A stretch of 63,114 nt of DNA, counting the filler, from Octopus bimaculoides (Eukaryota): the NCBI RefSeq assembly GCF_001194135.2. It is 5 parts of 4 records of this genome, joined end to end, with 100 filler letters (N's around TTAATTAATTAA, not from the genome) between each part and the next. Parts side by side here need not be neighbours in the genome. Positions count along the whole stretch, not along the records: positions 20,877 to 42,398 come from NC_068981.1; 4 more parts are not named here. One strand, 5' to 3'. The position numbers were made by a program, and so were the translations under genes. The notes under the pieces are model-generated. The model searched no databases and was not told the DNA's origin. It saw nothing but the letters and a program-made list of their open reading frames with translations. Positions within the stretch are counted from its first letter, which is position 1, and every line of letters starts with the position of its first letter. Shown here in pieces: positions 35,041 to 35,193 of this stretch.

Positions 35041-35193
35041 GTATCCTTTACTTATGGCTTTTAATAACACCTTGTATTTATTTTGTTGTTTATCACATTC
35101 ATTTTTTTTTTGTCATCTGTTAATTACTTGAATTATCTGTTATAAATAAAAGTTGATTCACATAAAAAGAAAAAATTCCTTAACACATAAACG
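35041..35193 (+). other. U12-type (minor spliceosome) intron, 153 nt, GT...CG
   Basis: 5' site GTATCCTTTA at 35041; branch site TTCCTTAAC at 35176-35184; no polypyrimidine tract; 3' end 10-11 nt after the branch A. Confidence 0.88.

Follow-up and report, generated by a model that had tools for sequence, protein, structure and literature searches.

A U12-type intron with GT-CG ends in the p38 MAPK gene of Octopus bimaculoides

The p38 MAPK gene and its 153-nt intron

The DNA analysed here, called the window, is a stretch of 63,114 nucleotides from Octopus bimaculoides (NCBI RefSeq assembly GCF_001194135.2), filler included, composed of five parts joined end to end. The part from NC_068981.1 (positions 20,877 to 42,398) contains a p38 MAP kinase gene on the plus strand, one intron of which is of U12 type and ends in CG. 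The features of the locus, with positions counted along the window, are as follows.

30963-31010 and ~39222-39401, plus strand: further exons of the p38 gene, read within this part
33201..33318, plus strand: upstream exon with the activation-loop TGY motif (tblastn, splice sites, and RNA loose ends that match its 3' end)
34969..35040, plus strand: coding exon, 72 nt, including the first base of the His codon (RNA contigs and reads, translation)
35041..35193, plus strand: U12-type intron of the p38 MAPK gene, 153 nt, phase 1, GT..CG ends (RNA joints and composition)
35041..35049, plus strand: U12-type 5' splice site GTATCCTTT, 9/9 against RTATCCTTT, beginning exactly at the RNA-defined junction
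35176..35184, plus strand: U12-type branch-point sequence TTCCTTAAC, 9/9, in line with the consensus TCCTTRAY, with the presumed branch adenosine at 35183
35192..35193, plus strand: non-canonical 3' terminal dinucleotide CG (six DNA runs), with C35192 as the derived base
35194..35273, plus strand: coding exon, 80 nt, (H)IDQLNKILIMLGKPSEEFIENISSSD (RNA joints, translation)
35274-36765, plus strand: ordinary GT-AG intron after the 80-nt exon (RNA joint)
36766..36844, plus strand: next downstream exon, AREYVRSLPNIISKDFERYFENANPL (RNA joint 35273^36766, GT..AG)

The exon at 33201-33318 has 92% identity to human MAPK14 by tblastn. The translation of the three RNA-joined exons has MAPK11, MAPK12, and MAPK14 as its best PDB matches (E ~1e-22). 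The Pfam Pkinase family is matched at E 5e-31, and database homologues carry the names p38, MAPK14, and MAPK11; cephalopod proteins are absent from the 120 homologues listed. The product has the kinase domain and TGY motif of a p38 MAP kinase and is closest to MAPK11/12/14. RNA contigs align from 34967, and the start of the 72-nt exon is placed at 34969 instead because the AG at 34967 can be assigned to either side of the junction before it; the acceptor before this exon reads ...ttcttctAG^ (a caret marks an exon boundary). All other intron boundaries read in the gene are GT...AG, and the acceptor is usually preceded by a T-rich tract.

Several minor features accompany the gene. Partial matches to other contigs point to a paralogous kinase gene that has a 36-nt stretch of the 72-nt exon (34971-35006, WSVGCIMAE) at ~90-94% identity. 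The paralogue continues ...CTTGGCCGAAAACAC(C/T)TATTTCC(A/T)GGTAAA, and its exon seems to stop after ...FPG at a U2-type-looking GTAAA donor. This suggests a second MAPK paralogue that would have a differently placed, major-type intron. At 39170-39225, a direct duplication of ~35 nt (period 35, 25 nt identical) spans the acceptor of the exon at ~39222-39401 and contains TTGATTATTCTAATTTTAGCTATT twice; it offers two candidate AG acceptors, and the p38 frame is kept by the second only. Just downstream of the same exon, two open reading frames lie on the minus strand (39990-40391 and 39567-39776). A PHD finger is matched by one of them (Pfam E 2e-6), and the other contains ...GRGRPRKTWDEVVKHDL..., a stretch that resembles the tail of invertebrate retrotransposon ORFs. 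The two are probably a decayed mobile element. Runs of N that mark assembly gaps (~21980-22980, 27150-27650, and 40650-40750) are flanked by TA/CA-type microsatellites with GC near zero.

The intron splits the D and H codons of ...FPGND^HIDQL... in phase 1. The upstream exon ends in ...AATGATC with its last base at 35040, the intron closes with ...ACATAAACG at 35193, and the next exon opens with ACATTGATCAA at 35194. The plus-strand context is ...CCT GGA AAT GAT C^GTATCCTTTACTT...(153 nt)...AAAAAATTCCTTAACACATAAACG^AC ATT GAT CAA TTA.... The intron is 77% A+T. Pyrimidines make up 40% of its last 40 nt, where a polypyrimidine tract is absent, and an A-rich stretch, aaaaagaaaaaa, precedes the branch site. 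The last intron base is 10 nt from A35183 and 11 nt from A35182. Past the branch site, the intron contains no further AG. The closest AGs upstream lie at 35151 and 35168, and the only nearby ACs are at 35191-35192 and 35194-35195. The first G past the branch site is G35193, and the next, G35199, is 16 nt off.

With both strands of the whole window counted, each of the two U12 motifs matches just once; dinucleotide-preserving shuffles lead one to expect 0.56 matches for GTATCCTTT and 0.20 for TTCCTTAAC. By a rough estimate, the chance of finding both exactly where they are, one at the exon end and the other 10 nt before the next exon, is ~1e-10. The 5' splice site, the branch site near the 3' end, and the lack of a polypyrimidine tract are those of a U12-type intron, and the GT-CG ends are neither of the canonical pairs, AT-AC or GT-AG. 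These pairs are typical of U12-type introns and do not define them (PMC3584512, PMC7367187).

The first-pass annotation of this DNA had proposed a natural U12-type GT-CG intron in the p38 MAPK gene, and DNA, the RNA junction, and orthologues support it. Its perfect U12 donor, branch site, and CG end at 35193 are exact to the base, and the sequence has, as it said, no AG from the branch site to the exon. Hand translation of the two AC ends (35192 and 35195) gives a stop at once in both cases, again as described. The frame D-H-I-D-Q that it read across the junction agrees with the translation of the RNA-joined exons.

Orthologous introns and the origin of the CG end

All five p38 loci compared have an intron at precisely this position and in this phase; they are listed here with the 5' splice site, the branch-like sequence, and the intron class.

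Penaeus vannamei, shrimp (L004): C^GTATCCTTT; ACCTTAGC...AG; U12 GT-AG
Larinioides, spider (L005): C^GTATCCTTT; ATCTTAAC...AG; U12 GT-AG
Apostichopus japonicus, sea cucumber (L001): A^GTATCCTTG; TGCCTTAAC...AG; U12 GT-AG
Phoxinus, fish, MAPK11-like (L002): T^GTATCCTTC; TCTTTAAC...AG; U12 GT-AG
Trichoplax sp. H2 (L003:2382-2470): C^GTAAGA; ...AG; U2-type, 89 nt

The introns of shrimp, spider, sea cucumber, and fish all begin with GTATCCTT, have their branch-like sequence within the last ~22 nt, and are U12-type. The flanking exon sizes of 72 nt and 80 nt are kept in both loci checked, those of Apostichopus and Phoxinus, which bears out the earlier description of the 80-bp exon as conserved. The fish MAPK11-like gene likewise confirms the earlier statement that placed a U12 intron of vertebrate p38 genes here. 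The Trichoplax intron has no U12 branch site, and its state is consistent with a U12-to-U2 conversion in placozoans. Together with the related species below, these loci show that the U12 intron is an old one in Bilateria, with GT-AG ends in all the other species examined.

In related species, DNA contigs align over the whole intron at about 94-98% identity. Organisms B (X15, X18, X19), D (X16, X17), and H (X39) have an A at 35192 and thus an ordinary GT-AG U12 intron, and the mRNA of organism B (X37) has an exon junction identical to that of the window species. Because B, D, and H carry this A, the CG is the derived state: a single A-to-C transversion gave rise to it once the lineage had separated from them. 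Very probably, the octopus has an ancient p38 MAPK U12-type intron in which a single A-to-C change at the second-to-last base turned GT-AG into GT-CG within the lineage.

One sample labelled organism B, X13, shares 0.68 of sampled words with the window species; the remaining B runs share 0.34-0.37. X13 carries CG at 35192-35193 and also a C-to-T change at 35179 inside the branch-site motif. Either the sample is mislabelled or it represents a closer relative that has the CG too.

The major (U2-type) spliceosome might instead remove the intron through a non-canonical CG acceptor. U2-type GT-CG introns are annotated in Drosophila, where 8/8 cases have RNA-seq support (PMC4528330), and the U2-type intron at the same position in Trichoplax (GTAAGA...AG) implies that class conversion occurs at this site. 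However, all eight Drosophila cases stand beside a similar canonical alternative splice (PMC4528330), and the octopus intron is without one. Its donor, ATC^GTATCC, is by inspection a poor U1 site, with G absent at -1 and purines absent at +4/+5. The absence of a pyrimidine tract (40% Y, A-rich tail), the perfect U12 branch site at U12 spacing, and the U12-type orthologues across Bilateria also argue against removal by the major spliceosome, which is very unlikely. The same features suggest that the intron depends on the minor spliceosome.

The CG in DNA and its splicing in RNA

The base at 35192, on which the first-pass annotation turned, is C and not A in the contigs of six independent DNA runs of the same species (X1, X3, X4, X8, X10, X11), which come from four studies dated 2015-2025. 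None of the six differs at 35192 or 35193, and none has an alternative contig. The raw 2026 DNA runs X23 and X24 have a coverage of just ~1x at the CG site. Within the species, the runs differ inside the intron only at 35101, where X10 and X11 have one extra T in a T run. A sequencing or assembly error at 35192, the former of which had been offered as an alternative from the start, is excluded by the C in all six runs. A common AG allele in the species is unlikely, and the CG is apparently fixed.

The junction 35040^35194 is present in 11 RNA runs, in contigs of seven and raw reads of four, from at least six studies and under four species labels. It is reported as a joint that skips 153 with GT..CG ends and with a 'both' value of 0, which leaves no positional ambiguity. 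Four sets of RNA contigs from the window species (X25, X26, X33, and X38, from three studies) each hold this joint, and the same mRNA junction is found in the RNA contigs X29 (label G) and X37 (label B) and in the raw reads X46 (label I). In raw reads of the species itself, the three 2026 RNA-seq runs X47-49 contribute 17, 13, and 10 reads across the junction, 40 in all. The neighbouring GT-AG junction 35273^36766 has 23, 29, and 20 reads in these runs.

The U12 junction was counted on 34955-35285, and there no other joint reached the listing threshold in X47-49. A wider table, 33150-36900, is swamped by repeat-derived joints. Both flanking introns contain very high-copy repeats (35320-35570 and 33906-34035, the latter a GA-rich simple repeat) with depths of hundreds to thousands in DNA and RNA, and these repeats give many chimeric joints.

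Within the intron, raw-read depth is zero over 35051-35182 in X47-49, against the 40 junction reads, and the depth at 35039-35040 (~19, 13, and 10) is essentially explained by the junction reads. Neither AC (35192, 35195), nor the AA at 35190, nor any downstream AG serves as an acceptor in the raw reads at the listing threshold. At steady state, removal of the intron is precise and essentially complete. The junction foreseen from the sequence is thus the one used in RNA, with no different junction in its place, and a look for intron retention in the three raw-read runs gives none.

Alternatively, an AG allele that escaped notice could be the source of the spliced mRNA, and the CG allele would be a splice-dead polymorphism. 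The RNA data hold no intronic reads by which the sequenced animals could be genotyped at 35192, and related species have A at this position. Against this, the six DNA runs from four studies have only C and no alternative contig, and normal splicing, at a depth like that of the neighbouring junction, is seen in each of the species' RNA runs that were inspected (X25, X26, X33, X38, X47-49). A further sample, X13, likewise carries CG. Such a hidden allele is highly improbable, and the suggestion that the CG is a splice-damaging allele is countered by the C in all six DNA runs together with the spliced RNA.

An artefact of reverse-transcriptase template switching, misassembly, misalignment, or RNA editing to a canonical site has next to no probability: non-canonical junctions are often template-switch artefacts (PMC4176328) and AG acceptors can arise from AA by A-to-I editing, but this junction has no direct repeat ('both' = 0), lies in an AT-rich and not a GC-rich intron, is identical in all those runs, studies, and labels, in contigs and raw reads alike, and keeps the conserved frame D-H-I-D-Q-L. 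Editing of a genomic base into AG was rejected separately. The odd base is a C, which A-to-I editing does not convert to A, and editing of the AA at 35190-35191 leads to a frame shift.

3' splice-site choice and related minor introns

The reading preferred here remains a minor-spliceosome intron that has recently lost its penultimate A. U12 3' splice sites have an optimal spacing of 11-13 nt from the branch site and need no pyrimidine tract, ZRSR2/Urp is the 3' site factor, and U12 introns with non-canonical termini can be spliced (PMC3584512). In the octopus intron, the U11/U12 di-snRNP would recognise the 5' splice site GTATCCTTT together with the branch site TTCCTTAAC. The 3' cut would then be set by the distance from the branch point and would take the first G that the permitted window offers. 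This is G35193, at 10 nt from the branch A, a spacing close to the lower limit of the 11-13 nt optimum. The terminal G could still act as partner to the G at the 5' end, so that the choice of base at -2 would not be critical here, where the other signals are perfect. A U12 intron that starts with GT appears to need a terminal G at the right distance, and its -2 base to matter little.

Dietrich et al. in 2001 reportedly found the penultimate A to be essential in the AT-AC intron of P120. Efficient use of a penultimate C is not what that model predicts. The natural GT-CG intron, together with the GT-GG and GT-TG introns described below, shows that the P120 result does not generalise to GT-type introns.

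A rate-limiting role of the intron in p38 expression, as first proposed, is not supported, and steady-state RNA cannot measure kinetics. The recent A-to-C change at -2 likely came without visible loss of splicing. That the change is not neutral, through a slower second catalytic step or ZRSR2-dependent 3' recognition, or else that -2 specificity is relaxed genome-wide, is unlikely. A slowing effect would leave no trace in steady-state RNA, since transcripts still unspliced remain in the nucleus or get degraded. If the change did slow splicing, the p38 output of this lineage would be unusually sensitive to minor-spliceosome activity, and the feedback between p38 and U6atac known from mammals would become sharper.

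The locus offers a clean natural test of how the minor spliceosome chooses its 3' splice site, set in a deeply conserved and otherwise perfect U12 intron of an essential stress-kinase gene. The -2 A was lost recently, and the AG is kept in sister species; the same phosphodiester bond is cut, with no retention or cryptic site detectable. This supports, for GT-type U12 introns, the sufficiency of branch-site distance and a terminal G, as well as near-neutral subtype switching. The AG/CG natural pair suits a minigene comparison. Gene prediction and read mapping that allow canonical ends only are likely to break or shift the octopus p38 gene model.

GT-CG minor introns are already catalogued, and the octopus p38 intron is a well-documented addition and no new category. 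For conserved minor introns from many genomes, Table S1 of Larue & Roy 2023 (NAR 51:10884, PMC10639083) counts GT-CG ends in 46 of ~73,700 animal introns, a share of 0.062%, and in 5 plant introns, with 159 GT-GG and 29 GT-TG. As tabulated there, the GT-CG introns resemble the octopus one in having a U12 5' splice site and branch site, a GT start, and a CG end, in being one base from the canonical pair, and in having minor-type orthologues. The table gives counts and describes no individual case, to which the octopus intron adds a raw-read junction, apparent fixation, and AG-to-CG polarity.

An earlier survey of U12 introns in five species found 8 GT-GG, 1 GT-TG, and no GT-CG, and one-base subtype switching between human and mouse was frequent (Sheth et al. 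2006, PMC1557818). The GT-GG intron of ARAF is conserved in human and mouse, whereas that of SLC12A7 is GT-GG in human and GT-AG in mouse (Sheth et al. 2006, SpliceRack). The GT-GG and GT-TG introns are like the octopus intron in keeping the terminal G, in having lost the -2 A, and in switching between related species by a single substitution. They differ in that their -2 base is G or T, while that of the octopus intron is C.

Minor introns are also known in the MAPK family. A U12 intron comes after exon 6 of JNK (Chang et al. 2007), and p38MAPK too has a minor intron (PMC8199999). In vertebrate JNK the upstream exon is duplicated into the mutually exclusive exons 6a/6b, with a U12/U2 hybrid intron, a state of which the octopus p38 gene has no sign. 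The other p38/JNK family U12 introns are GT-AG, in contrast to the GT-CG of octopus p38. Apart from this, the octopus intron belongs to the same gene family, and its p38 position, phase, and flanking exon sizes match those of the fish MAPK11-like gene and invertebrate p38.
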